Of a stretch of DNA of 64,000 nt, positions 27,423 through 54,617 are shown piece by piece. The notes under the pieces are model-generated. The model did no database searches and was not told the origin of the DNA. It saw only the letters and a list, made by a program, of their open reading frames with translations. Position 1 is the stretch's first letter. Every line of letters starts with the position of its first letter. A program made the position numbers and the translations under genes. Origin of the DNA: Rebecca billardiae RCC1528 (taxonomy: Eukaryota; Protista; Haptophyta); the NCBI GenBank assembly GCA_965240325.2, contig OZ251226.1:2356001-2420000 (forward strand), given 5' to 3'.

Positions 27423-30400
27423 TTATTTGCGGCGCCGGCGGGAGAACCTACGTACGCGCACGGCCGTGCCGAACAAGGAACAGCGAGGCGCCACGAGGGC
27501 TGGGGCGCTTGTCAGTGAGCGGTCACTGTGACTTGCTGTCGTTAGCCCAGGGCGGTCATTGGTGCGATGATTCACCACCGGCAGCAAAGGGGGGGGCTAC
27601 GACGCGACACAGCAGCAGGGCGCGCTACGCGCACGCGCGCGCTAGGCACGCACCACTCCTGCGCAAAGGCTTGAGCAAAATGCGCCTGGAGCTGCGCTTT
27701 GCTCGCCTGGTACGCCGACGCCTGCTGCTTCAGCCAGCGATAGGCGCCCGTGCCGCCCTCTCCGGACACAGCGGCCAAGGCGCCGCGCTCGTCCGCGAAC
27801 GGGTCGCCCGCAACACCCCGCGCCAGTCTGCTCAGCTCGGGATCGGCGAGGGTTGTGGCGAGGGTCGTGAGCAGCGGACGCACGCGGTTGAGGAGCGCGG
27901 ACTGTGAGACAGAGCTCACCGCCTGAGCGTGCGGCGCCGTCGTTTGAGGGGCACGGGGAGGGGCATGCGCGGGGTGAACACTCACGGGGCACGGGCAGGC
28001 GGATGCGCCGCGCACCGGCGGCGCACGGGCAGGGCAGGCGCGCCCCGAGAGTGAGCAAGCGGTGCACAATGCACGCGCATGCGCGCGCCCGCGTGCCGCG
28101 CCGCACCCGCATCAAGCCTGCGGCGTGCATCCTCTCTTCGAGCGCAGCGATCAGCGCACTCGCGGCCTGGTGACGCGCGAGCTGCTTGTTACTCGCGGGT
28201 GGGCCCTCGACGCGCACGCTGCCCAAGGCGGGCGTCTCGACCGCCGCGGCGAACGTGAACTGCGGGTCGTGGTCGGGGCCAGTGCGCGCCGCCTCCGACA
28301 GCTCTGCGCGGCGGCGCGCGGGCCGCGGCGTGGGCGGAGGCAGCGGATGGCGTGAACGGCGTGCGGCAGGGCACGCGGCGAATCGGGCACACGCGCCCAG
28401 ACATCAGCTCGCTGCGTCTCTGGGAGCACGCGCGCACGCACACCTGGCTCGGGCCAGCCGTTAGCCGCGCACGTTTCGAAGAGCGCGCTCGTCAGCGCCG
28501 CGGGCGCGACCCCGTCGAGTGAGTGCCCAGCGCTCGCGCGCAGCAGCTCAATCGGCCGGAGGGGTGAGACCGGCCGGCCGGCCTTCGCCTCGAGGACCTC
28601 GGCCATCTCATCGCCGGCTGCCCAGACCCACGCGAGCGTGCTCGCGCTGCCCTTGCTCGCGCCGGGCCGGCCGGGCGGGAGCACCTGCCCCGGGACGGTC
28701 GACTCGGGCACCCAGGCCAGGCTCGGGTGGTTGAGCGCGTGCGGCCACGGCAGCAAAGCCTCGATGCCGCGCGCGCGGCAGCAGAGCGCGCGGCTCAGCG
28801 CGCCGTGCGAGAAGGTCGGGCCGCCGGTGACGACGCTCGCTAGGAAGACCGGGTGCGCGAGCAGGTGCGCGAGCGCGCCGCCCTGAACCCCGCACACGTT
28901 CCAGCGGAGCAGCTTGTCGCAGCAGGACAGCTTGCGCGCACGCGGCAGCACCGCGCTCAGCTGGACGCATGCCGAGTGCTCCGCGGCGCGCGCCGCGGCG
29001 AGCCGCGCGCTCGCCTGCGCCGCGAGGGCCTCGGCCTCCGCCAGCGCTCGTGCCGTCGGCGTGTCGGCGTCGCCGAGCGGCCCGGCCGCGCGATCCGCGC
29101 CGGGCGGCGGCTCCGAGCCGCGGCCGCCCGCGGCCGCTTCCTTGTCGTCCGCAGGATCGGCGGTACTTGTCAGCTCAGCCGCGCTGCGCTTAGCGATGCG
29201 AGCGCGCGCGGCCGGTGCCGGAGCGCCGTCGGCCGCGGGCATGCACGCGTCGTCGGCCGCGGCCATCACACCATCGTCCGCACCGGAGGCGGCTCGCGGC
29301 TCGGCAGGAGCGGTGGCTGCGGGCACTGAGACGGCAGCAGGATCGGCCGCCTCGGCGCGAGCGCGCGCGCGCGCGGCGAGTGCGCGCGCGCGCAGCTCCT
29401 TCTCCTCGACCGTCAAGTCTCGCACGAGCTCGGCGAGTGCTGTCGGTCCGATCGTCGGCGGCACGGGCGTGAGTGACTCGCCCGTGTCGAGGCGCACGCG
29501 CAGCACGCCGTGCGTCTTGCGCCGGCTGGCGGCGTCGGAGCCCGCGGGCCAGTGCAGCTCGAAGGGCACAGGGTCCTCCTGCAGCCCAAGCATGGCGCCG
29601 CCGGGCGCGGCGTGCCAGTTGCACGTCAGCCGACGGCACGGCCGCTTGAACCTCTGCTCGAGTGGGTAGATCTCACCGTCGCCGCACGGGCACGAGCTCA
29701 CGTAGAGGTGGAAGCGCACACCGGGCTTGAGCGCGAAGCGCTGGCGTGGCGGCTCGGCCGCCGCCGTCGCCGAGAGCTCGAGGACCGAGGGCTCGCCCCG
29801 CGCACAGCTGTGCATCTCGTCCACGAGATACCGGCGCAGCGCGCGGCGCGCGAGCACCTCGGCGTGGGCGTCGAGCACGACGTCCTCGTCCGGCACGCGC
29901 ATCTGCTCGGTGACGAAGCCCGTGCCCACCGCGACCGCGACCGGCCGCAGGCTGATGGGCATGCCATCCGCCCTCTGGATGACGCGCACGCCGCCCACGT
30001 CCGCGGTGCCGGCCGCCAGTCGGGGCGGCAGCCGCAGCCCGGCTGGCACCTCCTGCACAATGCTCGCGACGCACGTGTGCGCGGGCGTTCGCACGCCCTT
30101 GCGCGCAAGCGCCGTGTACGCATCGACGGCTAGCCGGACGATGGCGACGGCGAGCGGGTCGTCCACGGGCTCGTCCGCCAGGCAGCTCAGCGCGTGCTCA
30201 GCGGCCGCGTGCCGTGCGCGCTGCTCGGATGCGCCGCAGCCCTGCGCGATGAGCACGCCATTGATGAGCGCGTCGACGCCGAAGACTCGCGGCATGGGCG
30301 AGTGCGCCGGCGGCGCCCACGGGATGAGCTCGACGCTCAGGCCCTGCTGCGCCCCGAGCTCGAGCAGCTGCTGCACGGGCGTCCGCTGCGCAGCGCCGCG

Positions 30401-30787
30401 GCCGGCTGCCCCGGCTCGGCCGGCCGGTGGCGCGGACGTCGGCCGCGCGGAGGGTGCGGCCGCCGGAAGCGGCGCGACCTGGGAGGCAGGGGAAGAGGCC
30501 AGCTGGCTACCGCTGCCTCCGTCGTACACCGGCGTCCGTGGGTCCCGCAGCGCGGCGAGCGCCGCCGCACGCCGGGCGACCTTCTTGCTGCTGCCGGTGC
30601 CCAGATAGGAGAAGCGCGCGGGCTCGTCCGCCGGCCCAAAGGTGACACGCACGGTGTGCGTCCGCTCGTGGTCGTGGCCTGTGGTCCCGCGGTCCGCGTA
30701 CTCGGGGATCGCCCACTGCCGTCGCTGGCACGCCACCTGCAGGCGAGAGACGTGGTCGTCGTCGCTCGCGAGCCCCTTGACGCCCAT
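27423..30787 (-). CDS. ADAR-like dsRNA adenosine deaminase (dsRBD-dsRBD-deaminase with a third dsRBD inserted), 4 exons
   Basis: Exons 30787-28444, 28303-28107, 27922-27654, 27447-27423; the last intron is less certain, with an alternative stop at 27572. Motifs DAHAEVLARR, FHLYVSSCPCGD, GVLRVRLDTGES, KLSCCDKLLRWNVCGVQG, YRWLKQQASAYQASK, plus three dsRBD signatures. Confidence 0.88.
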
Positions 30788-30921
30788 GGCGGACGAGTTC
30801 GCGAGGTGGGCCCGCAAGCGGCTCTTGAGTGTGACGAGATCGATCTATTTATTATAAAACCGTCCATGCGCTTTCAAGCCGCTGGAGCTTTCAGCAGCAA
30901 TAAATCCAGCATACAGTTTAC

Positions 30922-31422
30922 TGCAGCACCCTCCCCGTGTGGTGTCAGAGCGCGCTCTCGAGCGCGTGCCTCCGAGCGCGGGGCGGCCGCTTGCTGCAAT
31001 GGCCGCCTCGATGAGGTGCGGCAACGCGCCCCTCATCTGCCTGCGCCGGTCTGTTTTGTGGCGGTGTCTTTGTGCAGTGTTGGATGGCGTTAATCACGCC
31101 TTAACCAAGTGTGCACGTTAAATCATAGTAAACTGTAAGAATAAGAGACGCACACAGCTCAGGCAGGCGAGATCGACGCCCGCCAACTGTCACCGCCCAT
31201 GAAGCCGTCGCCGATGGCTGCGCCGCCTTAGTTTACTATACAGTTTACTAGTACTATGTTTTAACGTGCACACTAGACACCGCCACAAAACAGACCGGCG
31301 CAGGCAGATGAGGGGCGCGTTGCCGCACCTCATCGAGGCGGCCATTGCAGCAAGCGGCCGCCCCGCGCTCGGAGGCACGCGCTCGAGAGCGCGCTCTGAC
31401 ACCACACGGGGAGGGTGCTGCA
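30922..31422. repeat. Perfect 148-bp inverted repeat (30922-31069 / 31275-31422) formed by two tail-to-tail family A elements
   Basis: Base-by-base reverse complement. Inner ends GTGTGCACGTTAAA(T/A)CATAGTA also match. Confidence 0.93.
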
Positions 31423-34887: not shown

Positions 34888-36939
34888 TCAAGCCCCCATC
34901 GTGGCGTCCTCGTCCACAAACGAGAGCCCGCGCTGCTCGTCGCGCAGGGCGGCGAAGAGCGCGCGGCCGATGCGCGCCTGGCTCGAGATGTACCACGCGA
35001 CCTCGCCGGCCGCGGGCTGGCCGTCAGGCGCGGCGGGCCCCGCGCCATCACCTCCCGGCGCGTCCGCGGCGCCGCCGCCACGACCGACCCGCCCGTCCTC
35101 CTCCACCATCTCGGTCAGCCGGCGCGCGGACAGGTTGAGGAGCGCGCGCCCGTCCGTGCCGGGCGGCAGCACGACCTGCGAGAAGCGGCCGCCGTGCGCG
35201 TTGGCGATCCACGCGCGCACGTGCTCGGCCGTCCACTTGTGCACGGGGAGCCGCTCGTACGCGAACTCGTCGTCGGCCTCGCCACCGCGTCGCCGCCGGC
35301 GCATCGGCACGTCGAGCACGACCGCGTGCGCAGGCGGCGCGACCACATCCTCGCGCGCGCCGTCCGTCTTGTCCGCCGCGCCGGCTGATCGCTTGACGCC
35401 GCCTGCGCGGCCGCCCGGCGGCAGCGGCTGCGCCGCCTCGTCGAGGCCGAGGTGCGGGGCCATCATCGTGGTGTAGTCGAGCGTGTTCAGCGTGTGCAGC
35501 ACGTCCGCCGAGCCCGGCGCCACCGCGGCGATGATCGCGGTCCGGTGCTGCGGGTCCACGAAGCACTGCTGAAGCACGCGAGTGAGCGCGGACGCGCGGA
35601 ACGGGACGCGCACGCCCGCGCCGCCGGAGCCGGCGGGGCCGGCGTCGGCGGGTTCGGCGTCGGCGACGTTGGCCGCGGGCGCGCCGAGCTCGTTGAGCGC
35701 GCGCGGCGCGCCGCGCTCGCGCGCGAGTGCGTGCGCGCGCGCCGCCTGGCGGAAGCACTCCTTGAGGCTGAACAGCGCGTGGTTGATGGCGGCCGACTCG
35801 CGGTGGTCTGCAGCCGTCATCTGGTGCGTCTCGTAGTTGCGCTCCGAGCCGGCGAGGTCGACGAGGCGGAGCGTGCGCCCGGTGGGCGCGAGCTCGAGCA
35901 CGCACACCGCGTGCGAGCGCGACGAGAGCGCGTTGCGCTCCGTCGCCGCCGTCTTGCGCAGCGCGAGACCGTCGGCGAGGGCGCCCAGCAGCTCCTCGCG
36001 CGAGCGCGCGTCGCGCCGCGTCGCGCCGCGCGCGTGCGTGATCCCAGCGCCGTCCGAGCAGAGGCGCACGGGCGCGCGGGCGTTGAGGAGGTCGTACGCC
36101 CCGCCGCCCGCGCGCTCGCGCCCGCTCACCTCGAAGAAGGTGACGCGCACGCCCGTCGGCCGCTGCGCGCGCCCGCCCCGGTCGCACGCGTCGTCGGCGC
36201 CGTCAGCGCCAGTGTCGGGCAGCTGCTGTGCGATGGAGCGGAGCAAGCCCATGAGCGTGTGCGTCTTGCCCGCGCCGGTCTGGCCGTAGAGCAGCAGCGT
36301 CGCGTCGCCCACTCCCGCCATCGCACGCTCGAGCAGCGGCCTCGCCGCCAGATCGAACACGGCCGACTCCGGCGCGTGCGGCGGCCAAACGCCGTCGGCC
36401 GCGTAAAACTTGTGCGTCATCGTCAGCCGCGTGCCCGAGCGGGCGAGGCGGCCGTCGTGCACGACGAGCGCGCGGGACATGCGATCTCCCATGTCAAGCG
36501 CGGCGTACTCCCCCGCCTTCGCCTCGTGCGGCAGCAGCGGGCGCACGCGCACGAAGACGCGAAAGGGCGCGAGCGCGTGCTCCTTGGCGTGCGCGCGCAG
36601 CGCGCCGACGCGCGTGTGCTCGCGGGCGACGATGGTGGGCACGAGGGCGCCCTGGCCGGGCATAGCCTCGTCAACGATCATCGCGAGCAGGTCCGCGGAC
36701 AGCTTCGGCAGCATGCCCGGCGCCGGGAGCTGCTGGCCGCGCACGAGCGCGCGCACGACGTAAAAGTCCGCCTGCGCATCGAGGATGGCCGGCCGGTAGA
36801 TCTGCGTGGCCTCGCGCACGGAGAAATGCTGCCGCGCGTCGATGTTGGCACCCCGCCATGCTGCTTCCTGCGCGGCACGCGCCTCCGCGTTCCGCGGCGC
36901 GTCCTCGCCGAGCTCAAAGTCCACCTCGTCGCGCTGCAT
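34888..36939 (-). CDS. Kinesin motor protein (kinesin-13-like) with C-terminal SAM-like domain, copy 1
   Basis: VFVRVRPL, YGQTGAGKT, NALSSRSHA, LVDLAGSER, VPFRASALTRVL. C-terminal WTAEHVRAWI...DGRALLNLS. Confidence 0.88.
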   Translation of the reverse strand: MQRDEVDFELGEDAPRNAEARAAQEAAWRGANIDARQHFSVREATQIYRPAILDAQADFYVVRALVRGQQLPAPGMLPKLSADLLAMIVDEAMPGQGALVPTIVAREHTRVGALRAHAKEHALAPFRVFVRVRPLLPHEAKAGEYAALDMGDRMSRALVVHDGRLARSGTRLTMTHKFYAADGVWPPHAPESAVFDLAARPLLERAMAGVGDATLLLYGQTGAGKTHTLMGLLRSIAQQLPDTGADGADDACDRGGRAQRPTGVRVTFFEVSGRERAGGGAYDLLNARAPVRLCSDGAGITHARGATRRDARSREELLGALADGLALRKTAATERNALSSRSHAVCVLELAPTGRTLRLVDLAGSERNYETHQMTAADHRESAAINHALFSLKECFRQAARAHALARERGAPRALNELGAPAANVADAEPADAGPAGSGGAGVRVPFRASALTRVLQQCFVDPQHRTAIIAAVAPGSADVLHTLNTLDYTTMMAPHLGLDEAAQPLPPGGRAGGVKRSAGAADKTDGAREDVVAPPAHAVVLDVPMRRRRRGGEADDEFAYERLPVHKWTAEHVRAWIANAHGGRFSQVVLPPGTDGRALLNLSARRLTEMVEEDGRVGRGGGAADAPGGDGAGPAAPDGQPAAGEVAWYISSQARIGRALFAALRDEQRGLSFVDEDATMGA

Positions 36940-38149
36940 CGCGTGCACCCACGCCCACCTTGAACGAATGAACGCAGCTTCAAACCGCCCTGTCCAGCGC
37001 GACAATTCCCTGGCGCCGGGACCGCGAAATGGCGGCCGACGCCCGAAAGGCGGGCCGAAACGCTCTTTTCGCCGGGGTCCGGGCGCACGCCGACACTTTC
37101 CGCAGAACTACTTTATTCCGCCAAGTGTTCTCGCCGCTCACTGACCTAGTAGTAGTACTCACTCCAGTCATGCACCAGTTGTGTCTGTTGATCACAGATC
37201 AGTCTGTGACTGAGTACTCACTGACCACTCCAATGACTCCATCTCCATAGGGCTGACCGCTGAGTCTTATAGGACACTGATAGTCTGTCTGACTGCTACG
37301 GAGTACGGTAATCACCGGAGTCGGTCACTCCGCGCCGGCGTCGTCCGCGTAAGAGCGCGTTGGCCGTAGCGGTATCGCTGGCGGCCGACGCATCCGAGCC
37401 TGAATATGCCAGTCAGTCAGGCTTTCGGTGGGCGCTTGCTCGGCCGCTCGGTCCCGGCGCAAACGACAGCCACTGGCACTGACTCTGAGCCCAACTCCCA
37501 ACTCCCATCGGTGCCGGGTGCGGCCGTGCGGCCGCTGCTTGTCACTACTGTCTACTCACCAGACAGCAGACTCCAGACAGAGAGTCGGTCCAGAGTCCAG
37601 ACGCCAGCTGGCTATGAATAGCGGCAATGCTGCCGACCGCGGAGGCAGGCCTTTAGATTTTTTTCGACATAGTCTTTAGCAGAAGCCTAGCTTAGCTGCG
37701 GAAGCTAGCAGCGGGCCTCGGAAGCTGGCAGCAGAGCTGCCCCGTCAGCCTGTGGCCGTCATTACGGATTACCGTCATAGCCGTGCGGGCCGCGGCGAAT
37801 ACGGAAAAATCGGGCCGGCCTCAATGACAATGGGCCGTGACGGACGACGCAGACCGATGACGGCGACGCCACCGACGGTCCCGGTGCCCGGGACGCGGGA
37901 CTTTCGGACTTCGGTGCGTCGCCGCCGCTGCTGTCGGCTGTGCGGACTGACTCAGACTGTCCTAGTACTCCTAGTGCGGTGTGCCAGTGTCTAACTCTAA
38001 AACACGACGCTGTCAGTGTCACTGATCTGTATGTAAGTGACTTACACTAAGCAGACAGCGCATCAGTGACTCATTTTCAGTGCAGACTCAGTAAGTCACT
38101 CCGGATCTAGCTCGGACGATGACTCAGTCAGTCATGAAGCCTCTGACCA

Positions 38150-40455
38150 TCATCGATCATGATGCGTGGACGTGGTCGTTGGCGACTGCTGGCGGCCTCG
38201 AGCAGCAATCAGCGCCCGTGCCTCCGCCTCCGCAGCCAGGGTCACCCGCGCCTCAGCCTCACCCGCTGCAGCCTGCGCCGCCCGTGCCTGCTCGCCCTCG
38301 CAGTTGCGCACCATGTCACGGCCCAGCGGCGGCGGCGGCGGCTGCATTGGCGGCACGGGCGGTGAGTGCGACGGCGCCAAATAGTGCGAGCGCAGCGAGG
38401 CAGGGTCCGCGTAGAAGGCGGCGCACGGCGAGGTCAAGGCGTCGCGGTCACACCCGCCGCCCGCGCCTGCGTGCCCTGCCTTGCCCATCGCGCGCGCGAA
38501 CTCGCGATACTCGATCTTCCCATCGCGGTTGGTGTCGAGCTCCTGGAAGAGCGCCGCGAGCTCGGACGGGCGCTCGATGCGCGCCGCGGGCTCGGGCGCG
38601 GCGGCGGCGTCGGCTCTGCCGCGCTCCGCCGAGTTGTACACTGGACTGTGCGCGAGGTGGTAGGGCACGTGGCCCCGGCCGTGGCCTGACGGCGGCGGCG
38701 GCGAGTGCGGCTGGCCGTACGAGGCGCCCATCCCCGGCGCCGCCGGGTGCGCGTGCGGCGGAGCGCTACCCGCGCTCGCCGCGTGGTGTCGAGGCTCGGG
38801 CGCCGCGTGCGCGAACTCGCCGGCTGCCATCGGCGCGTGCGGCTGCTCGTACTGGCAGCGATAGGAGTGCTGCAGCGGCTGATGCGAGGGGCGCGCGGCT
38901 GCGGCGCCGGGCGGCGTGCCCGCGTGCGCAGGCTGCGGCGGGTGATGGTGCGCGCCCGGGTGATGGCGCGCGCCACCGCCCACCGCATCGTACGCGGCGT
39001 GCACCGGAGGGCCGCCGCCCTGCTCCGTCCCGTACCCCACCGCGGCATCGCGCGGGAGCTCCGCCCACGACGGCAGCTGGCCCACCGCCGAACCGTACCG
39101 GCTGGGGCCGTCGGGCGGAGCGCCGCCGGCGTACATCTCGGCGGTGTGGTGCAGCGCCCGCCACGTGTCCACGAGCGCGAGCTCGCCGTCGGAGAGGAGC
39201 AGGCTGGGCAGCGTGCTCCGCTTCGGCCCCGTGTGCGGGCTCTTGCCCCTCTCCACCTTGCTCCACGCGGTGCTCGCGGCTGACGACCACGCGTGCGCCT
39301 GGGAGCTGTCGCGCTCGCGCGGCGGTGACGGCGCCGGCCGCGGGCCGTCCGCGGCGGAGAGCTCGCCACGCCGCAGCATGTTGATCTCGCGGAACTCTGC
39401 GGTGCTCAGCGCCACGTTGTGCACACGCGGCGCGCGCGTGCGCACCGGGTTCCTCGGGTCAGTGCGGCCGAGCGTGCGCTGAGCGGCGGCCATGCCGCTC
39501 GCACGCGGCGTGAGCACATCAGGGACCGTGTACGATGGCAGGGCGGCCGGTCCGGCAGCGCTGCCTGCTGGCAGGCGCGACGGATCCGGCGGAAGCTGCG
39601 GCGGGCTCGACGCCGCGCCGCGCCTGGGCGGTGGCGGCGGCGGCGGCGAGCGCGCGCTGCGTGCCGCCGGCGCCGGAGCCGCGTGCGCTGCCGCTCGGCC
39701 GCCGCCGCCACCGTCGCAACGTGGCGGAGGGCCGAGCCCCAGCTGGCCTGACCCCACCGCCGCGCCGCCGTGCGCGGCCGCCGTGGGCTGCCACGCGGGC
39801 GCTGGGGGCGCGGACTGGCGCGGGCTCAGCTGTCGCAGCATGTGCTCCCGCGGCGGCGAAAACTCGGCGACGCCCGGGTGCGGTCTCCCGCTGCTCGGTG
39901 GCGGCGGCGACTGCGGCCGGCTCGCGCGCGCAGGCGGTGCCGCCGGCATCAGCGGCGGCGCGTGTGGCTGCTCGTCCGAAGGGGGCCACGTCCTCGGGGG
40001 CGATGGAGGCGCTGGGCGCTGTGCCCACGACGCCCCCTCGGTGCTGGCACCCACACTCTCTGGCGGCATCGCGGACAAGTGCTGATGGCCGTGCGCGCCT
40101 GCCTCCCATGCTCGGAGCCGCCACTGCGCGCGAGGCGAAGGTGCGGCGGGTGGGAGGAGGGGATGCGCCAGTGGGATTGCAGTGGTCAGTGGCAACCGCG
40201 CCAGGCACATCGCGTGGCCGGGAGGTTGGCATGTCGCCGGCACGCCTTTGCGCGCACCTCGGACGATTCGACGTCGATGAGTCTGCGCTCCATCTCCTGG
40301 AGCCGATGCTGCCACTGCGCGAGCGACAGCTCAAGCTCGGAGAGCCGCAGGGCTTCCAGCGCATTCTGCCGACGCTCCTCCGCGGCGGACACCCTCGCCT
40401 CAGATGCCATCGGAGACGCGGCTTCGTATTCGCGATAGTAGCCGGCCGACTCCAT
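38150..40455 (-). CDS. Pro/His-rich protein with N-terminal coiled coil and one EF-hand, copy 1
   Basis: Exon 1 MESAG...LQEMERRLIDVESSE. Intron 40124-40257 joins in frame. EF-hand LFQELDTNRDGKIEYREF. Confidence 0.65.
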
Positions 40456-40645
40456 CGCCCAGCACGATTTGAAATGCCGCCCGGAGTTCATCCGTCCGAG
40501 TTCCATAAAATGGTCTCGGCAGATTTTTTTCGGAGAAAACTCCGTTTATTACACATTTGATGGTCCTTTGTTTACACGCCGCCTCGGTAGGCTGTCCGAC
40601 TCTACACTGCCCCCGTAGCCAGCGGAGGGGGGCCGGACAGGCTAC

Positions 40646-41080
40646 CGCCTCGGAGGTGCGGCAACGCCCCTCCCGGCCTGCCTGCGCCGGTCTGTCTTGT
40701 GGCGGTGTCTTTGTGCAGTGTTGGATGGCGTCAATGGGACCACCCCACAGTGAGTTGGGCTTGTATGCTGTTGGCAATGGCATACCCCCCCCCCCCCCCC
40801 CCCCCCCCCCCCTGGAGGCGAGCTGTCCACAGTGGAGTGGTGTCAAGGCACTACAGTAGCCGCACTAGGTGTCTCGGTCAGTGTTTTGAGGTTGGGTGTC
40901 GAGCGGGAGTGGTGCCGGTTCATTCAGGTTGTGGGCTGGCCAGGGACAGGGTAGGGCTGGAGGCTTCGGCCGCCAGTCTGATCACCCGGAGCCCGTTATA
41001 TAAAGCAGGGGAATTTATTATTAATCACGCCTTAACCGTAACGATCAAGTGTAACGCACCTTAAAACATAGTAAACTGTA
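40646..41080 (+). mobile_element. Longer family A element with internal poly(C)28 and TATATAAA
   Basis: Matches 31003-31091 at its 5' part and 31091-31137 at its end, with about 290 extra bp between. Confidence 0.65.
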
Positions 41081-41111
41081 TGACTGTATCGAATTGTCGG
41101 CGAAACATATT

Positions 41112-41867
41112 TCATTGCAGGCTGAAAAGTGCCACGCTCACACGTCGCTCGACGTCCTCGTCCATGGACACCGCGTGGCCGCGGAAAACACGGTCCTGAT
41201 GACGCTCCTCGAAGGGCAAGCCGAGCGTCTTGAGCTCCTCGACGAGCGTACGCCGGGCGATGTTGACAGAGTCCACGACAAGCACCTGAATGTTGCGCTC
41301 GTGTGCCTCTGCACACCTGCGGGCGAGCGCGCGGGCCACCTGCTCATTGTAGCACACGTCGGCGGCGAGGAGGCAGTCGACGGCCGGGAGCTCCTCCGCG
41401 CCGCACAGGTCGAAGACGGCCGTCTCAACGGCGTCAAGCCCTTGCGCTTGCGCAGCTCTGTCGACGAGCTCCAGTGGCGCAGGGTTGTTGTCGGTCGCAA
41501 TCACCCGGCTGGCCCCACGTGCTGCGGCAGTCAGCGAGACCAGCCCTGTGCCACACCCGACTTCCATGAAGGTGCGATCGGCGCAGGGAAGCGCCGGCTG
41601 CCCCAGCTCGTCCGCGATCACGGTCGCTGCCGGCCACAGCACCAGGCCAAACGGGTCGAGCACATCGTCGTTCAGACTCCACGCAGACACGAGGTCGGAC
41701 GTCCTCTGCACTTCGATGACATACGGCTGCGCCTCACCGGCGTGGTGCGTGCGCACGGCTCGGCCGCCGAGCACCGAGGCACCGCCGCTGGCTCTCGGGC
41801 CGGACCCTCGAGGTTGGATAGCTGTACCGTGGGCGAGAGCCACCAGCAGAATCATGGACGACGCCAT
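41112..41867 (-). CDS. SAM-dependent protein methyltransferase (family 16 / METTL21-23-like), copy 1
   Basis: DPFGLVLWPAA, MEVGCGTGLVSL, IATDNN, LLAADVCY. Start at 41867 or 41909. Confidence 0.85.
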   Translation of the reverse strand: MASSMILLVALAHGTAIQPRGSGPRASGGASVLGGRAVRTHHAGEAQPYVIEVQRTSDLVSAWSLNDDVLDPFGLVLWPAATVIADELGQPALPCADRTFMEVGCGTGLVSLTAAARGASRVIATDNNPAPLELVDRAAQAQGLDAVETAVFDLCGAEELPAVDCLLAADVCYNEQVARALARRCAEAHERNIQVLVVDSVNIARRTLVEELKTLGLPFEERHQDRVFRGHAVSMDEDVERRVSVALFSLQ

Positions 41868-41907
41868 CGTGCCAAAGAAAATTATTATCACGATTCGGAG
41901 AGGAATC

Positions 41908-43614
41908 ATGGCGGTCAGCTTGGCGGCGGCCGTGCTCGCGGCGGCCGCGCTTGCGTCACCACCATCGCGCGCGACGAAGCTCGCGCCGGGCACCTCCGTC
42001 TCCGCTTGGCATCGCCCCTTGTCCTTCTCCCCTGCCTGGAGGGCGGGATCGCACCGACGACCTGCCCAGCGGTCGCTGTGGCGTGAGCGGCAGAGCGCAT
42101 GCAAAGCCGTGCTGATGTGTGCAGGGCATTCGGAGCGGCTGCACGACCCGTTTGTCGAGCGCCTGTCGCCTCCAAGGCAGGTGGGTGGCGCACAAGACGG
42201 CGCGCCCCTCTCCGGCCTCCGCTTTGCGTGCAAGGCCAACATGGACGTCGTCGGCCTGCGCACGGGAAACGGCTCGCCCGACTGGCGCGCAAGCCACAGG
42301 CCAGCTTTCAGGCAGGCGGAGTGCGTGAGCGTGCTGCTCCGCACGGGCGCAGCGCTGGTGGGCGTGGCGCACATGGACGAGCTCGCCTTCTCCATCGCGG
42401 GCGAGAACGCGCACTACGGCGCGCTGGACAACCCGCGCGCGCCGGGGCACGCGGTAGGGGGCTCCTCATCGGGCGCCGCAGTCGCCGTCGCGTGCGGCGA
42501 GGTGGACTTCGCCCTTGGCACGGACACGTGCGGCTCGGTGCGCGTGCCCGCCTCGCACTGCGGGGTGTGGGGTCTGAGGCCAACCCACGGCGCCATCCCG
42601 CTCGACGGCGTGTGCCCACTCGCGCCCTCCTTCGACACTGTGGGTATCCTGGCGCGCAACGGCACCACCCTCATGGCTGCGAGCAGCGTGCTCCTGGCGT
42701 CGCCGGCTGGGCCTCCAGCTGCGCCACCCGCGACGACCGCCGTGCTTCTTGCGGAAGACGCCATACGCCTGTACTCATACGCCGAGGTGGGTGAGCTAGA
42801 CGCTGAGGCGCGAGCGCGCGCAGAGTCAGACGCGGCGGCGCACTTCCGCACGGCCGCTGCCTCGCTTTGCACCGCGCCAAGCAGTGGCGGCGGCCCGGCG
42901 CCCGACGCTCTTGCGGTGGAATTGGGCGACGCGATGCTCGAACGCGCCGGCCCGGCGCTCGCCCGGTACGTGCCCACGACGCTCGACGGCGAGAGCGGGG
43001 CGGCTGCGTCACGGGAGGGGCAGCCCGCTGCGAGCGACGGCCTGCGCGCGCTGGAAGCACTCTCGCGCGCGCTCTTTGCCAACGAGGCTGCGGACGCGCT
43101 CGGGCCGTGGGCAGCAGAGTTCAGCGACACGTGCGGCCGAGATCCGGATCTGGGCGAGGATGTGGGCGCGCGGCTGCGCTGGGCGATCTCACAGGCTCGC
43201 GTGGAGGAGGCTGGGCGCGAGGCGCGCGAGGCGGTAGCAAGCGCGTTGGACGAGCTGCTTGCCTCGGCCGAAGCTGAGGCCGCCGGCGAGGCTGGTGGCA
43301 CCCGCCTCGGCATCCTGTGCATGCCCGCCGCGTGCTCGCCGCCGCCTCGGCCAGGCGTCGCCAGCGGCGCGCAGTATCGGGAGCGCGCGTTCGCACTGTC
43401 AGCGCTCGCGAGCCTGGCAGGATGCCCGCAGCTGGTTGTGCCCGTGGGAACCTGCGAGCACACGGGGCTGCCGCTGGCGGTATCATTCGTCGCGCGGCCT
43501 GGGCGTGACCGAGAGCTGCTGCAGCACTGCGTGTCATCGTTCATGGCAGGCCCGGCGCCGCCGGACAGCCCTGCCGGGCGAGCTGCGGCGGAGTCGGCAC
43601 CGCCATCAAGCTGA
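41908..43614 (+). CDS. Amidase signature family protein (AMI1/Toc64-amidase-like), copy 1
   Basis: FACK, MDELAFSIAGENAHYG, GGSSSG, GTDTCGSVRVPASHCG. N-terminal signal-like segment. Confidence 0.9.
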   Translation: MAVSLAAAVLAAAALASPPSRATKLAPGTSVSAWHRPLSFSPAWRAGSHRRPAQRSLWRERQSACKAVLMCAGHSERLHDPFVERLSPPRQVGGAQDGAPLSGLRFACKANMDVVGLRTGNGSPDWRASHRPAFRQAECVSVLLRTGAALVGVAHMDELAFSIAGENAHYGALDNPRAPGHAVGGSSSGAAVAVACGEVDFALGTDTCGSVRVPASHCGVWGLRPTHGAIPLDGVCPLAPSFDTVGILARNGTTLMAASSVLLASPAGPPAAPPATTAVLLAEDAIRLYSYAEVGELDAEARARAESDAAAHFRTAAASLCTAPSSGGGPAPDALAVELGDAMLERAGPALARYVPTTLDGESGAAASREGQPAASDGLRALEALSRALFANEAADALGPWAAEFSDTCGRDPDLGEDVGARLRWAISQARVEEAGREAREAVASALDELLASAEAEAAGEAGGTRLGILCMPAACSPPPRPGVASGAQYRERAFALSALASLAGCPQLVVPVGTCEHTGLPLAVSFVARPGRDRELLQHCVSSFMAGPAPPDSPAGRAAAESAPPSS

Positions 43615-45696: not shown

Positions 45697-47886
45697 CTAG
45701 ACCACCGCGCAGAATGCGTCTGAGCCCGCCCATTCCCGCCCATAACGAGTTACAGCGGCTCGATTGTGAGGCGGGTGCAAAGGCGGCGGGTGAAAGCGAG
45801 CCCCGCGCGGGCGGCGAGAGAGACGCGCGTGCATAGACCTGATGCGGGAGTGCCCGAACAACGTGAAGGTGCGTCCATCTTCCAAGCGCGCGACCGGTCC
45901 GACACCGCGCCACGCCAAACGAGCACCACGCGAGATGTACCACGCGACCTCGCCGGCCGCGGGCTGGCCGTCAGGCGCGGCGGGCCCCGCGCCATCACCT
46001 CCCGGCGCGTCCGCGGCGCCGCCGCCACGACCGACCCGCCCGTCCTCCTCCACCATCTCGGTCAGCCGGCGCGCGGACAGGTTGAGGAGCGCGCGCCCGT
46101 CCGTGCCGGGCGGCAGCACGACCTGCGAGAAGCGGCCGCCGTGCGCGTTGGCGATCCACGCGCGCACGTGCTCGGCCGTCCACTTGTGCACGGGGAGCCG
46201 CTCGTACGCGAACTCGTCGTCGGCCTCGCCACCGCGTCGCCGCCGGCGCATCGGCACGTCGAGCACGACCGCGTGCGCAGGCGGCGCGACCACATCCTCG
46301 CGCGCGCCGTCCGTCTTGTCCGCCGCGCCGGCTGATCGCTTGACGCCGCCTGCGCGGCCGCCCGGCGGCAGCGGCTGCGCCGCCTCGTCGAGGCCGAGGT
46401 GCGGGGCCATCATCGTGGTGTAGTCGAGCGTGTTCAGCGTGTGCAGCACGTCCGCCGAGCCCGGCGCCACCGCGGCGATGATCGCGGTCCGGTGCTGCGG
46501 GTCCACGAAGCACTGCTGAAGCACGCGAGTGAGCGCGGACGCGCGGAACGGGACGCGCACGCCCGCGCCGCCGGAGCCGGCGGGGCCGGCGTCGGCGGGT
46601 TCGGCGTCGGCGACGTTGGCCGCGGGCGCGCCGAGCTCGTTGAGCGCGCGCGGCGCGCCGCGCTCGCGCGCGAGTGCGTGCGCGCGCGCCGCCTGGCGGA
46701 AGCACTCCTTGAGGCTGAACAGCGCGTGGTTGATGGCGGCCGACTCGCGGTGGTCTGCAGCCGTCATCTGGTGCGTCTCGTAGTTGCGCTCCGAGCCGGC
46801 GAGGTCGACGAGGCGGAGCGTGCGCCCGGTGGGCGCGAGCTCGAGCACGCACACCGCGTGCGAGCGCGACGAGAGCGCGTTGCGCTCCGTCGCCGCCGTC
46901 TTGCGCAGCGCGAGACCGTCGGCGAGGGCGCCCAGCAGCTCCTCGCGCGAGCGCGCGTCGCGCCGCGTCGCGCCGCGCGCGTGCGTGATCCCAGCGCCGT
47001 CCGAGCAGAGGCGCACGGGCGCGCGGGCGTTGAGGAGGTCGTACGCCCCGCCGCCCGCGCGCTCGCGCCCGCTCACCTCGAAGAAGGTGACGCGCACGCC
47101 CGTCGGCCGCTGCGCGCGCCCGCCCCGGTCGCACGCGTCGTCGGCGCCGTCAGCGCCAGTGTCGGGCAGCTGCTGTGCGATGGAGCGGAGCAAGCCCATG
47201 AGCGTGTGCGTCTTGCCCGCGCCGGTCTGGCCGTAGAGCAGCAGCGTCGCGTCGCCCACTCCCGCCATCGCACGCTCGAGCAGCGGCCTCGCCGCCAGAT
47301 CGAACACGGCCGACTCCGGCGCGTGCGGCGGCCAAACGCCGTCGGCCGCGTAAAACTTGTGCGTCATCGTCAGCCGCGTGCCCGAGCGGGCGAGGCGGCC
47401 GTCGTGCACGACGAGCGCGCGGGACATGCGATCTCCCATGTCAAGCGCGGCGTACTCCCCCGCCTTCGCCTCGTGCGGCAGCAGCGGGCGCACGCGCACG
47501 AAGACGCGAAAGGGCGCGAGCGCGTGCTCCTTGGCGTGCGCGCGCAGCGCGCCGACGCGCGTGTGCTCGCGGGCGACGATGGTGGGCACGAGGGCGCCCT
47601 GGCCGGGCATAGCCTCGTCAACGATCATCGCGAGCAGGTCCGCGGACAGCTTCGGCAGCATGCCCGGCGCCGGGAGCTGCTGGCCGCGCACGAGCGCGCG
47701 CACGACGTAAAAGTCCGCCTGCGCATCGAGGATGGCCGGCCGGTAGATCTGCGTGGCCTCGCGCACGGAGAAATGCTGCCGCGCGTCGATGTTGGCACCC
47801 CGCCATGCTGCTTCCTGCGCGGCACGCGCCTCCGCGTTCCGCGGCGCGTCCTCGCCGAGCTCAAAGTCCACCTCGTCGCGCTGCAT
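45697..47886 (-). CDS. Kinesin copy 2 with chimeric C-terminus created by the duplication junction
   Basis: Identical to copy 1 up to VAWYIS, then reads into unrelated sequence (RGARLAW...). Confidence 0.8.
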   Translation of the reverse strand: MQRDEVDFELGEDAPRNAEARAAQEAAWRGANIDARQHFSVREATQIYRPAILDAQADFYVVRALVRGQQLPAPGMLPKLSADLLAMIVDEAMPGQGALVPTIVAREHTRVGALRAHAKEHALAPFRVFVRVRPLLPHEAKAGEYAALDMGDRMSRALVVHDGRLARSGTRLTMTHKFYAADGVWPPHAPESAVFDLAARPLLERAMAGVGDATLLLYGQTGAGKTHTLMGLLRSIAQQLPDTGADGADDACDRGGRAQRPTGVRVTFFEVSGRERAGGGAYDLLNARAPVRLCSDGAGITHARGATRRDARSREELLGALADGLALRKTAATERNALSSRSHAVCVLELAPTGRTLRLVDLAGSERNYETHQMTAADHRESAAINHALFSLKECFRQAARAHALARERGAPRALNELGAPAANVADAEPADAGPAGSGGAGVRVPFRASALTRVLQQCFVDPQHRTAIIAAVAPGSADVLHTLNTLDYTTMMAPHLGLDEAAQPLPPGGRAGGVKRSAGAADKTDGAREDVVAPPAHAVVLDVPMRRRRRGGEADDEFAYERLPVHKWTAEHVRAWIANAHGGRFSQVVLPPGTDGRALLNLSARRLTEMVEEDGRVGRGGGAADAPGGDGAGPAAPDGQPAAGEVAWYISRGARLAWRGVGPVARLEDGRTFTLFGHSRIRSMHARLSRRPRGARFHPPPLHPPHNRAAVTRYGREWAGSDAFCAVV

Positions 47887-49096
47887 CGCGTGCACCCACG
47901 CCCACCTTGAACGAATGAACGCAGCTTCAAACCGCCCTGTCCAGCGCGACAATTCCCTGGCGCCGGGACCGCGAAATGGCGGCCGACGCCCGAAAGGCGG
48001 GCCGAAACGCTCTTTTCGCCGGGGTCCGGGCGCACGCCGACACTTTCCGCAGAACTACTTTATTCCGCCAAGTGTTCTCGCCGCTCACTGACCTAGTAGT
48101 AGTACTCACTCCAGTCATGCACCAGTTGTGTCTGTTGATCACAGATCAGTCTGTGACTGAGTACTCACTGACCACTCCAATGACTCCATCTCCATAGGGC
48201 TGACCGCTGAGTCTTATAGGACACTGATAGTCTGTCTGACTGCTACGGAGTACGGTAATCACCGGAGTCGGTCACTCCGCGCCGGCGTCGTCCGCGTAAG
48301 AGCGCGTTGGCCGTAGCGGTATCGCTGGCGGCCGACGCATCCGAGCCTGAATATGCCAGTCAGTCAGGCTTTCGGTGGGCGCTTGCTCGGCCGCTCGGTC
48401 CCGGCGCAAACGACAGCCACTGGCACTGACTCTGAGCCCAACTCCCAACTCCCATCGGTGCCGGGTGCGGCCGTGCGGCCGCTGCTTGTCACTACTGTCT
48501 ACTCACCAGACAGCAGACTCCAGACAGAGAGTCGGTCCAGAGTCCAGACGCCAGCTGGCTATGAATAGCGGCAATGCTGCCGACCGCGGAGGCAGGCCTT
48601 TAGATTTTTTTCGACATAGTCTTTAGCAGAAGCCTAGCTTAGCTGCGGAAGCTAGCAGCGGGCCTCGGAAGCTGGCAGCAGAGCTGCCCCGTCAGCCTGT
48701 GGCCGTCATTACGGATTACCGTCATAGCCGTGCGGGCCGCGGCGAATACGGAAAAATCGGGCCGGCCTCAATGACAATGGGCCGTGACGGACGACGCAGA
48801 CCGATGACGGCGACGCCACCGACGGTCCCGGTGCCCGGGACGCGGGACTTTCGGACTTCGGTGCGTCGCCGCCGCTGCTGTCGGCTGTGCGGACTGACTC
48901 AGACTGTCCTAGTACTCCTAGTGCGGTGTGCCAGTGTCTAACTCTAAAACACGACGCTGTCAGTGTCACTGATCTGTATGTAAGTGACTTACACTAAGCA
49001 GACAGCGCATCAGTGACTCATTTTCAGTGCAGACTCAGTAAGTCACTCCGGATCTAGCTCGGACGATGACTCAGTCAGTCATGAAGCCTCTGACCA

Positions 49097-51402
49097 TCAT
49101 CGATCATGATGCGTGGACGTGGTCGTTGGCGACTGCTGGCGGCCTCGAGCAGCAATCAGCGCCCGTGCCTCCGCCTCCGCAGCCAGGGTCACCCGCGCCT
49201 CAGCCTCACCCGCTGCAGCCTGCGCCGCCCGTGCCTGCTCGCCCTCGCAGTTGCGCACCATGTCACGGCCCAGCGGCGGCGGCGGCGGCTGCATTGGCGG
49301 CACGGGCGGTGAGTGCGACGGCGCCAAATAGTGCGAGCGCAGCGAGGCAGGGTCCGCGTAGAAGGCGGCGCACGGCGAGGTCAAGGCGTCGCGGTCACAC
49401 CCGCCGCCCGCGCCTGCGTGCCCTGCCTTGCCCATCGCGCGCGCGAACTCGCGATACTCGATCTTCCCATCGCGGTTGGTGTCGAGCTCCTGGAAGAGCG
49501 CCGCGAGCTCGGACGGGCGCTCGATGCGCGCCGCGGGCTCGGGCGCGGCGGCGGCGTCGGCTCTGCCGCGCTCCGCCGAGTTGTACACTGGACTGTGCGC
49601 GAGGTGGTAGGGCACGTGGCCCCGGCCGTGGCCTGACGGCGGCGGCGGCGAGTGCGGCTGGCCGTACGAGGCGCCCATCCCCGGCGCCGCCGGGTGCGCG
49701 TGCGGCGGAGCGCTACCCGCGCTCGCCGCGTGGTGTCGAGGCTCGGGCGCCGCGTGCGCGAACTCGCCGGCTGCCATCGGCGCGTGCGGCTGCTCGTACT
49801 GGCAGCGATAGGAGTGCTGCAGCGGCTGATGCGAGGGGCGCGCGGCTGCGGCGCCGGGCGGCGTGCCCGCGTGCGCAGGCTGCGGCGGGTGATGGTGCGC
49901 GCCCGGGTGATGGCGCGCGCCACCGCCCACCGCATCGTACGCGGCGTGCACCGGAGGGCCGCCGCCCTGCTCCGTCCCGTACCCCACCGCGGCATCGCGC
50001 GGGAGCTCCGCCCACGACGGCAGCTGGCCCACCGCCGAACCGTACCGGCTGGGGCCGTCGGGCGGAGCGCCGCCGGCGTACATCTCGGCGGTGTGGTGCA
50101 GCGCCCGCCACGTGTCCACGAGCGCGAGCTCGCCGTCGGAGAGGAGCAGGCTGGGCAGCGTGCTCCGCTTCGGCCCCGTGTGCGGGCTCTTGCCCCTCTC
50201 CACCTTGCTCCACGCGGTGCTCGCGGCTGACGACCACGCGTGCGCCTGGGAGCTGTCGCGCTCGCGCGGCGGTGACGGCGCCGGCCGCGGGCCGTCCGCG
50301 GCGGAGAGCTCGCCACGCCGCAGCATGTTGATCTCGCGGAACTCTGCGGTGCTCAGCGCCACGTTGTGCACACGCGGCGCGCGCGTGCGCACCGGGTTCC
50401 TCGGGTCAGTGCGGCCGAGCGTGCGCTGAGCGGCGGCCATGCCGCTCGCACGCGGCGTGAGCACATCAGGGACCGTGTACGATGGCAGGGCGGCCGGTCC
50501 GGCAGCGCTGCCTGCTGGCAGGCGCGACGGATCCGGCGGAAGCTGCGGCGGGCTCGACGCCGCGCCGCGCCTGGGCGGTGGCGGCGGCGGCGGCGAGCGC
50601 GCGCTGCGTGCCGCCGGCGCCGGAGCCGCGTGCGCTGCCGCTCGGCCGCCGCCGCCACCGTCGCAACGTGGCGGAGGGCCGAGCCCCAGCTGGCCTGACC
50701 CCACCGCCGCGCCGCCGTGCGCGGCCGCCGTGGGCTGCCACGCGGGCGCTGGGGGCGCGGACTGGCGCGGGCTCAGCTGTCGCAGCATGTGCTCCCGCGG
50801 CGGCGAAAACTCGGCGACGCCCGGGTGCGGTCTCCCGCTGCTCGGTGGCGGCGGCGACTGCGGCCGGCTCGCGCGCGCAGGCGGTGCCGCCGGCATCAGC
50901 GGCGGCGCGTGTGGCTGCTCGTCCGAAGGGGGCCACGTCCTCGGGGGCGATGGAGGCGCTGGGCGCTGTGCCCACGACGCCCCCTCGGTGCTGGCACCCA
51001 CACTCTCTGGCGGCATCGCGGACAAGTGCTGATGGCCGTGCGCGCCTGCCTCCCATGCTCGGAGCCGCCACTGCGCGCGAGGCGAAGGTGCGGCGGGTGG
51101 GAGGAGGGGATGCGCCAGTGGGATTGCAGTGGTCAGTGGCAACCGCGCCAGGCACATCGCGTGGCCGGGAGGTTGGCATGTCGCCGGCACGCCTTTGCGC
51201 GCACCTCGGACGATTCGACGTCGATGAGTCTGCGCTCCATCTCCTGGAGCCGATGCTGCCACTGCGCGAGCGACAGCTCAAGCTCGGAGAGCCGCAGGGC
51301 TTCCAGCGCATTCTGCCGACGCTCCTCCGCGGCGGACACCCTCGCCTCAGATGCCATCGGAGACGCGGCTTCGTATTCGCGATAGTAGCCGGCCGACTCC
51401 AT
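49097..51402 (-). CDS. Pro/His-rich EF-hand protein, copy 2
   Basis: Duplicate of 38150-40455. Confidence 0.65.
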
Positions 51403-52058
51403 CGCCCAGCACGATTTGAAATGCCGCCCGGAGTTCATCCGTCCGAGTTCCATAAAATGGTCTCGGCAGATTTTTTTCGGAGAAAACTCCGTTTATTACA
51501 CATTTGATGGTCCTTTGTTTACACGCCGCCTCGGTAGGCTGTCCGACTCTACACTGCCCCCGTAGCCAGCGGAGGGGGGCCGGACAGGCTACCGCCTCGG
51601 AGGTGCGGCAACGCCCCTCCCGGCCTGCCTGCGCCGGTCTGTCTTGTGGCGGTGTCTTTGTGCAGTGTTGGATGGCGTCAATGGGACCACCCCACAGTGA
51701 GTTGGGCTTGTATGCTGTTGGCAATGGCATACCCCCCCCCCCCCCCCCCCCCCCCCCCCTGGAGGCGAGCTGTCCACAGTGGAGTGGTGTCAAGGCACTA
51801 CAGTAGCCGCACTAGGTGTCTCGGTCAGTGTTTTGAGGTTGGGTGTCGAGCGGGAGTGGTGCCGGTTCATTCAGGTTGTGGGCTGGCCAGGGACAGGGTA
51901 GGGCTGGAGGCTTCGGCCGCCAGTCTGATCACCCGGAGCCCGTTATATAAAGCAGGGGAATTTATTATTAATCACGCCTTAACCGTAACGATCAAGTGTA
52001 ACGCACCTTAAAACATAGTAAACTGTATGACTGTATCGAATTGTCGGCGAAACATATT

Positions 52059-52814
52059 TCATTGCAGGCTGAAAAGTGCCACGCTCACACGTCGCTCGAC
52101 GTCCTCGTCCATGGACACCGCGTGGCCGCGGAAAACACGGTCCTGATGACGCTCCTCGAAGGGCAAGCCGAGCGTCTTGAGCTCCTCGACGAGCGTACGC
52201 CGGGCGATGTTGACAGAGTCCACGACAAGCACCTGAATGTTGCGCTCGTGTGCCTCTGCACACCTGCGGGCGAGCGCGCGGGCCACCTGCTCATTGTAGC
52301 ACACGTCGGCGGCGAGGAGGCAGTCGACGGCCGGGAGCTCCTCCGCGCCGCACAGGTCGAAGACGGCCGTCTCAACGGCGTCAAGCCCTTGCGCTTGCGC
52401 AGCTCTGTCGACGAGCTCCAGTGGCGCAGGGTTGTTGTCGGTCGCAATCACCCGGCTGGCCCCACGTGCTGCGGCAGTCAGCGAGACCAGCCCTGTGCCA
52501 CACCCGACTTCCATGAAGGTGCGATCGGCGCAGGGAAGCGCCGGCTGCCCCAGCTCGTCCGCGATCACGGTCGCTGCCGGCCACAGCACCAGGCCAAACG
52601 GGTCGAGCACATCGTCGTTCAGACTCCACGCAGACACGAGGTCGGACGTCCTCTGCACTTCGATGACATACGGCTGCGCCTCACCGGCGTGGTGCGTGCG
52701 CACGGCTCGGCCGCCGAGCACCGAGGCACCGCCGCTGGCTCTCGGGCCGGACCCTCGAGGTTGGATAGCTGTACCGTGGGCGAGAGCCACCAGCAGAATC
52801 ATGGACGACGCCAT
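52059..52814 (-). CDS. Protein methyltransferase, copy 2
   Basis: Duplicate of 41112-41867. Confidence 0.85.
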   Translation of the reverse strand: MASSMILLVALAHGTAIQPRGSGPRASGGASVLGGRAVRTHHAGEAQPYVIEVQRTSDLVSAWSLNDDVLDPFGLVLWPAATVIADELGQPALPCADRTFMEVGCGTGLVSLTAAARGASRVIATDNNPAPLELVDRAAQAQGLDAVETAVFDLCGAEELPAVDCLLAADVCYNEQVARALARRCAEAHERNIQVLVVDSVNIARRTLVEELKTLGLPFEERHQDRVFRGHAVSMDEDVERRVSVALFSLQ

Positions 52815-52854
52815 CGTGCCAAAGAAAATTATTATCACGATTCGGAGAGGAATC

Positions 52855-54561: not shown

Positions 54562-54571
54562 CACCGATCGA

Positions 54572-54617
<46 letters not shown>

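Follow-up and report, generated by a model that had tools for sequence, protein, structure and literature searches.

A gene for an ADAR-type adenosine deaminase with double-stranded-RNA-binding domains in the haptophyte Rebecca billardiae, a probable member of an independent, non-animal Tad1/ADAR lineage

Introduction

Does the combination of domains that bind double-stranded RNA (dsRBDs) with an adenosine deaminase domain, known from the ADAR enzymes of animals, also exist outside animals? The question is raised by a gene located on the minus strand, from 30787 to 27423, of a 64,000-nucleotide stretch of the Rebecca billardiae RCC1528 genome (assembly GCA_965240325.2, contig OZ251226.1, positions 2,356,001 to 2,420,000), referred to here as the window and numbered from its first nucleotide. 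An earlier note on this DNA had described the gene product as an ADAR-type deaminase acting on double-stranded RNA (dsRNA) in a non-animal genome, and as part of an undescribed adenosine-to-inosine (A-to-I) editing system.

In the literature, ADARs are regarded as an innovation of the metazoans (PMC4323055, PMC9989829) and as occurring only in metazoans, whereas the function of Tad1/ADAT1 is considered common to all eukaryotes (PMC3239186). No ADAR had been recorded when choanoflagellates were surveyed (PMC4323055). Protist ADAR-like genes were reported in 2017 for Symbiodinium and in 2025 for 24 protists, and the dsRBD was said to be absent from these proteins (PMC11946409). The claim of an undescribed system has therefore to be divided: the gene class is known already, while the dsRBD-bearing architecture outside animals is apparently unreported, and our literature search found no paper on a dsRBD-bearing ADAR-type enzyme outside animals.

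Here we analyze the gene, its product, and its relatives. Our preferred reading, to which we assign a probability slightly above one half (about 0.55) on the basis of sequence comparisons and structure models, is that the gene encodes an active dsRNA adenosine deaminase belonging to an independent, ancient, non-animal Tad1/ADAR lineage.

Results

Domain architecture of the Rebecca protein

The spliced gene model predicts a protein of ~937 amino acids (aa) in which, as the earlier note had read from the sequence, two dsRBDs precede a deaminase domain; all domains, exons, and introns given below lie on the minus strand. In the unspliced open reading frame (ORF; 28151-30817, 888 aa), which includes all sequence features quoted in that note, the Pfam A_deamin profile matches two stretches with 152.8 bits (E 2e-44), and Pfam dsrm scores 51.8 bits in total. 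At the cutoff of 23 bits applied to single dsRBDs, dsRBD1 (30533..30751, aa 13-85), whose loop reads G-H-D-H and whose helix begins with S-K-K-V-A-R, reaches 35.4 bits (aa 13-81), and dsRBD2 (30173..30382, aa 136-205) reaches 25.3 bits (aa 162-201). The arrangement typical of ADARs, with dsRBDs N-terminal to the deaminase, is thus present with two domains above the cutoff, to which a third, embedded dsRBD is added. This dsRBD3 (28107..28519, aa ~757-845) sits inside the C-terminal deaminase lobe, between the last beta-hairpin of the fold and its closing helices, shows a canonical G-P-D-H-D-P-Q-F loop, and is split by intron 1 between the end of exon 1 and the whole of exon 2; Pfam dsrm scores 21.7 bits from exon 2 alone. 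A second profile, a hidden Markov model (HMM) built solely from dsRBDs of animal-type ADARs, found three matches, dsRBD1 scoring 17.4 bits and dsRBD3 21.4 bits (spliced model, aa 780-831).

The N-terminal part of the deaminase (29453..30145, aa 215-445) was delimited with Pfam A_deamin, HMMER alignment to ADAR2, ADAR1, and Hydra ADAR, and column counts, and contains H308-A-E310, R314/R315, P-C368-G-D, H412-W-P, and the flipping loop with G-E437-S. Directly after the flipping loop follows an Ala-rich insert of ~168 aa (28949..29452, aa 446-613), and then the C-terminal lobe (28520..28948, aa 614-756) with S-C622-C-D-K625, R628, W629, C669-C670, and N-H687-P. The closing helices are encoded by exon 3, which matches A_deamin profile positions 260-326 with 15.9 bits and carries, according to the alignment, the Y-x3-K-x5-Y-x3-K ... 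W pattern of the inositol hexakisphosphate (IP6) pocket type; a phmmer search of exon 3 alone against the PDB returned no match.

Active site, flipping loop, and metal ligands

The catalytic and zinc center of the Rebecca protein is complete: H308, E310, C368, and C622 all occupy near-invariant columns of a 70-sequence alignment, and the corresponding HAE (29866-29858), PCGD (29689-29678), and SCCDK (28927-28913) motifs lie where the earlier note had located them. R314/R315 after H-A-E and K625, R628, and W629 after the second cysteine occupy columns of the same alignment that are invariant or nearly so, and the C-terminal Y/K/Y/K/W residues are spaced 0, +4, +10, +14, and +29, which is the consensus of the 70 aligned family members. 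The residues of the IP6 pocket, as listed for the ADAR2 structure, are all present with identical spacing, including the terminal W noted earlier, with the last K replaced by R in the Rebecca protein. They also occur in ADAT1 and hence do not discriminate between the two enzyme types.

In the HMMER alignment, the flipping loop G-V-L-R-V-R-L-D-T-G-E-S of the Rebecca protein is placed against G-Q-L-R-T-K-I-E-S-G-E-G of ADAR2, with E437 opposite E488, although this short segment taken by itself receives a low score. The earlier claim that the loop is ADAR-like, with Glu kept, and not of the ADAT1 type is upheld; the K-P-G-R-G loop of ADAT1 is absent. We take the second zinc site of ADAR1 to comprise H988, C1081, C1082, and H1103; the counterparts of these ligands in the Rebecca protein are H412 (29552-29554), C669/C670 (28778-28783), and H687 (28727-28729), which suggests that a second ADAR1-type metal site is probably present.

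The animal enzymes used for comparison were human ADAR2 (PDB 1zy7, 5hp2, 8e0f), Hydra ADAR (9dp5), and human ADAR1 (PDB 9b83, 9b84, 9b89). The Rebecca protein shares with the animal ADARs the order of N-terminal dsRBDs followed by A_deamin, the H-A-E, P-C-G, and S-C-x-D-K motifs, the R-R, D-K..R-W, and C-terminal Y/K/Y/K/W residues, and the flipping-loop Glu, and with ADAR1 the second-zinc ligands. It differs from them in its identity of only 23-30% over the alignment, in the dsRBD embedded in the deaminase, and in the 168-aa insert, its dsRBDs are not specifically ADAR-like, and, unlike ADAR1, it has no Z-alpha domains.

These features bear on an alternative according to which the protein binds dsRNA without editing it, in the manner of the ADADs, or acts as a mutator in genome defence by deaminating adenines of RNA:DNA hybrids or of DNA. 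Catalytically dead ADADs do exist in animals, and in a 2026 preprint, integrated viral DNA of a chlorarachniophyte is described as hypermutated from A to G at TpA sites, with an adenosine-deaminase activity suggested as the cause. However, the catalytic and zinc residues are all intact in the Rebecca protein and across its family, and nothing points to DNA targeting, so that we consider both versions of this alternative improbable.

Structure models

AlphaFold2 models were computed for aa 1-780 of the Rebecca protein and for a full-length relative, P0004. In the former (mean predicted local distance difference test score, pLDDT, 71), the core reached values of at least 90 and dsRBD2, with the alpha-beta-beta-beta-alpha fold, 84-95; the Ala-rich insert was modelled as long helices (448-481 and 577-613) around a disordered middle. 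A Foldseek search of the PDB with this model placed ADAR2, ADAR1, Hydra ADAR, and Caenorhabditis elegans ADR-2 at the top (E 1e-18 to 1e-12), followed by dsRBD proteins. The P0004 model (pLDDT 83, predicted template modelling score 0.78) contains three alpha-beta-beta-beta-alpha domains. Its residues 166-638 superpose on ADAR deaminases through the last helices (Z 41-43, root-mean-square deviation 2.4-2.9 Å over ~340-358 residues), and its embedded domain, residues 501-573, is modelled with pLDDT 91-97 and matches solved dsRBDs with Z ~11.

Gene structure

The gene model comprises four exons and three introns. Exon 1 (28444..30787), defined by the ORF, the Pfam matches, and the gene model, starts with the ATG at 30787 and encodes aa 1-781, that is, dsRBD1, dsRBD2, the deaminase core with the insert, and helix alpha1 of dsRBD3. 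Intron 1 (28304..28443) is 140 nt long and in phase 1, with the boundaries CAG^GTGTGCG ... GCGCAG^AG (^ marks the splice site), and is followed by exon 2 (28107..28303), which encodes the remainder of dsRBD3. Intron 2 (27902..28106; 205 nt, phase 0; CGG^GTGCGG ... CACAG^TCC) precedes exon 3 (27654..27901), and intron 3 (27448..27653; 206 nt, phase 2; TG^GTGCGTG ... GTACGTAG^G) precedes exon 4 (27423..27447), a micro-exon of 25 nt that completes the terminal W and adds F-S-R-R-R-R-K before the stop codon TAA at 27425-27423. The stop of the spliced model thus coincides with the gene end proposed earlier at 27423.

The final 100 residues of the 888-aa ORF represent intron read-through, and the sole record of the ORF product, in this unspliced form, is the Logan genomic contig ERR14847151. 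All three introns have donors of the type G^GTG(C/T)G and acceptors ending in (C/T)AG. Removal of intron 1 yields a complete dsRBD, which is uninterrupted in the transcripts of relatives: the contigs of the relatives P0004 and P0005 barely exceed their ORFs and are therefore transcripts, so that the embedded dsRBD is contiguous in mRNA, which supports the splicing model of intron 1. The splice of intron 3 was preferred for two reasons: the invariant Trp is retained, and position W+3 is basic, as in most relatives (family consensus W-x-x-K), the ending W-x-S-R also having counterparts among them. Alternative 3' splice choices past the conserved W were discarded, each of them replacing the W.

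The GC content at third codon positions is 0.87-1.0 in the conserved coding parts and 0.63-0.83 within aa 481-570 of the Ala-rich insert. The insert has no counterpart in most relatives, the closest of which (P0003/P0154) has a shorter insert at this site. It contains strong donors at 29283 and 29271, whose in-frame partners are only weak AAG/GAG acceptors (to 29137), and part of it may be an unrecognized in-frame intron.

A protist family with an embedded dsRBD

When 1.84 billion representatives were searched exhaustively with HMMER, 2,274 matches were obtained, none of them exceeding 47% identity to the Rebecca protein. The nearest of these, together with the Rebecca protein, form a protist family of nine proteins that we label pA and that includes sequences from environmental transcripts. 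Its other members are P0004 (JGI), P0005 (Logan), P0006, P0007, and P0011 (all ENA), P0012 (KAJ1462547.1, Pelagophyceae sp. CCMP2097), P0028 (KAJ1479470.1, the cryptophyte Baffinella frigidus), and P0159 (EukProt EP00040_P031434, from the transcriptome of the choanoflagellate Diaphanoeca grandis). The last three share the clade and the loop of the Rebecca protein and are 31-39% identical to it where they align; none of them has the Ala-rich insert, and their only annotation is as hypothetical proteins.

All pA relatives have in common the motif H-W-P ... L-R-A-K-L-D-x-G-E-S-L-T-P. An insert before the last helices occurs at the same place in all seven full-length aligned relatives, including the pelagophyte and choanoflagellate proteins; the cryptophyte protein is outside that alignment. 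Among the groups compared, the embedded dsRBD was found in pA alone. Pfam dsrm scores 77.6 bits in P0004, 76 bits in P0005 (three stretches), and 40.6 bits in P0012, and it also matches P0011 and P0007.

The choanoflagellate protein has, in addition, a long K/P-rich N-terminal extension, and it may represent either a choanoflagellate member of an otherwise algal family or contamination or transfer from algae. The closest relative, with 51% identity in the C-terminal lobe, was found on a genomic contig of 62% GC (L002; GCA_977009365.1, CDRMYC010006748.1); its flipping loop, too, is followed by an insert, and its N-terminus is missing, as the contig ends inside the gene. Metagenome contigs yielded 181 relatives, none nearer than those already known, with the pA loop in one of the 80 loci kept, and the viral contigs searched contained no relative.

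Phylogenetic placement

In the IQ-TREE analysis of 54 rows and 391 columns (LG+C20 with posterior mean site frequencies; supports given as ultrafast bootstrap/SH-like approximate likelihood ratio test), four groups were recovered: an animal-dominated ADAR clade (100/99), an ADAT1 clade (100/99), which includes proteins from Chytriomyces (named ADAT1) and Saccostrea (named ADAT1-like), the pA clade with the Rebecca protein (99/96), and a second protist clade (100/99), which has neither dsRBDs nor the flipping-loop Glu and includes Micromonas XP_003054961.1. The Rebecca protein is thus outside both the ADAR and the ADAT1 clades. Its assignment to the ADARs in the earlier note does not hold in this tree, which places it in a separate, deep clade; on the other hand, a robust position within ADAT1, the outcome named there as speaking most clearly against a dsRNA-directed enzyme, was not obtained either. 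In age and distinctness, the pA family equals ADAT1 and the animal ADARs.

The distribution of single characters separates the same groups. The flipping-loop Glu occurs in eight of nine pA members and in 35 of 41 rows of the ADAR clade. The full H/CC/H set of the second zinc site is present in 9/9 pA proteins, 9/9 proteins of the second protist clade, and ~31/41 rows of the ADAR clade; the CC pair and the His of the NHP motif are found in 0/10 ADAT1 rows, a character that sets ADAT1 apart from every other group.

A green-algal protein of Cymbomonas tetramitiformis (P0053, KAK3240331.1), which combines a Pfam z-alpha domain (39 bits) with A_deamin (239 bits) and has a G-E-G-T loop of the ADAR type, falls inside the animal-dominated ADAR clade; it represents an ADAR1-like architecture in an alga, contamination, or gene transfer.

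Genomic context and origin of the contig

The neighbors of the gene in the window are eukaryotic and include a CTNNBL1 homolog, an aquaporin, and PanC, and A_deamin queries match only this gene within the window. These neighbors bear on the explanation that the gene is animal contamination or was recently acquired from an animal, for which the domain architecture, otherwise typical of animals, would speak, as would the large Atlas clusters joining dsrm with A_deamin, all of which are metazoan. However, the window has a GC content of 59-78%, and the CTNNBL1 protein is equally distant from its plant, insect, and fungal counterparts (45-47% identity), so that the contig is not metazoan. The introns share their donor type with an intron of the CTNNBL1 gene (GG^GTGCGC), in line with the host-style introns described earlier; the best identity remains at 47%; and the position outside the ADAR clade excludes a recent transfer from an animal. 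The animal-origin explanation is hence refuted in practice, and the earlier judgement that the host is not an animal and that contamination is unlikely was borne out. The locus is a real, intact nuclear gene of a GC-rich non-animal eukaryote.

A perfect inverted repeat (30922..31422), with arms of 148 nt each (30922-31069 and 31275-31422) and an AT-richer spacer of 205 nt, is located between the aquaporin ORF, which ends 648 nt before it, and the deaminase ATG, upstream of which it lies by 135 nt. No other inverted repeat of at least 60 nt with arms no more than 2 kb apart occurs in the window. Its transcript, if there is one, would fold into a perfect dsRNA of 148 bp, an ideal ADAR substrate, and the repeat could, as a post hoc proposal, serve as an autoregulatory element; the region upstream of a relative's gene (L003) contains no comparable inverted repeat.

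The window also contains a direct duplication of ~8.6 kb (~35000-43600 and ~45950-54600; 100% identity, offset 10,947 nt), which contains an ORF resembling methyltransferases along with several unannotated ORFs and reflects either an artefact of the assembly or a segmental duplication of very recent date.

Discussion

Is the enzyme directed to dsRNA or to tRNA?

The Rebecca protein belongs to the same superfamily as ADAT1/Tad1 and shares with it the catalytic motifs and the IP6-type residues, and the principal alternative to a dsRNA-directed enzyme is that it represents the functional ADAT1 of the alga, forming inosine at position 37 of tRNA-Ala with dsRBDs that grip the helical arms of the tRNA. 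The pan-eukaryotic function ascribed to Tad1/ADAT1 (PMC3239186) would be in keeping with such a role. ADAT1, however, forms a clade that excludes pA, has no dsRBD, and carries its K-P-G-R-G loop after a long insert, both of which are missing from pA, where the Rebecca protein has L-R-V-R-L-D-T-G-E-S. The ADAR-type flipping-loop Glu is kept in the Rebecca protein together with the second-zinc ligands, the latter missing in ADAT1, and three dsRBDs seem more than a tRNA substrate requires. Yeast tad1 is non-essential, so that loss of ADAT1 would be tolerable. On balance, we regard a tRNA-directed ADAT1 role as unlikely.

Several observations weigh against the dsRNA-directed, independent lineage that we prefer. 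The branch joining the four groups is weak (87/67), and approximately unbiased (AU) tests on a 99-row tree rejected neither pA+ADAR (p 0.64) nor pA+ADAT1 (p 0.72), the latter grouping being one that the ADAT1 alternative would predict. The best PDB sequence matches of dsRBD1 are the second dsRBDs of Loquacious and TRBP, to which it is nearer than to ADAR dsRBDs, and the K-K motif of region 3 is lost in dsRBD2, where it is replaced by E-Q. The segment Q-T-W-D-G, which follows the flipping loop in ADARs, is missing from pA (in the Rebecca protein, Q-T-W-D-G...G-E-R-L), and an insert next to this loop, as in the Rebecca protein, is unusual. Moreover, the Pavlovales haptophyte Diacronema lutheri was listed in the 2025 survey with one ADAR-like gene and no ADAT (PMC11946409); if the same applies here, the enzyme might serve tRNA.

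Relation to other protist ADAR-like proteins

The ADAR-like proteins of Symbiodinium (OLQ07757), paradinids, diatoms, Ostreococcus, and Diacronema lutheri (PMC11946409) resemble the Rebecca protein as non-animal A_deamin proteins outside ADAT. They differ from it in having, according to the authors, no dsRBD, whereas the Rebecca protein and P0004, P0005, P0007, P0011, and P0012 have dsRBDs, and the dsRBD-less protist clade with the Micromonas protein is separate from pA and without the flipping-loop Glu.

For a protist ADAR-like protein, a mitochondrial role has been proposed (PMC11946409), and the Rebecca protein could likewise be an organellar editor of mitochondrial or plastid A-to-I sites, as suggested for the paradinid proteins. 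Against this, the Rebecca protein and its relatives open directly with dsRBD1, which leaves no room for an organelle presequence, and pA is distinct from the dsRBD-less clade. In addition, mitochondrial A-to-I editing is unconfirmed in other protists with sequenced mitogenomes, the Pavlova lutheri mitogenome being cited (PMC11946409). An organellar function therefore seems very improbable to us.

Proposed mechanism and origin

If the protein is the active dsRNA adenosine deaminase that we propose, its dsRBDs would dock the enzyme onto double-stranded RNA, and the G-E-S loop would turn the adenosine to be edited out of the duplex. Zinc bound by H308, C368, and C622, with E310 as proton shuttle, would then convert adenosine to inosine, in a fold presumably stabilized by a buried inositol phosphate and the second ADAR1-type zinc site. 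Its biological role might be, for example, to mark or destabilize viral, repeat, or antisense dsRNA.

As to the origin of the architecture, a dsRBD fusion shared with animals and a convergent one are both conceivable; two findings point rather to independent domain shuffling, namely the far better match of dsRBD1 to Loquacious and TRBP dsRBDs than to those of ADARs and the restriction of the embedded dsRBD to pA.

Implications

The ADAR that combines dsRBDs with a deaminase is presented in textbooks and recent surveys as having been invented by animals, and this architecture exists outside animals too. A wider reading, which we offer tentatively and hold to be somewhat less probable than its opposite, is that an A-to-I editing enzyme directed to dsRNA is present in marine algae from several supergroups and in at least one choanoflagellate, an enzyme that is either older than the animal ADARs or the product of an independent dsRBD-deaminase fusion, with a dsRBD inside the catalytic domain, and that in this alga is maybe self-regulated through the 148-bp hairpin upstream of the start codon. 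The pA family makes it testable whether dsRNA editing takes place outside animals and whether the fusion of dsRBDs with the deaminase arose once or twice, and its dsRBD embedded in the deaminase is a natural design of possible interest for engineering ADAR-based RNA editors.

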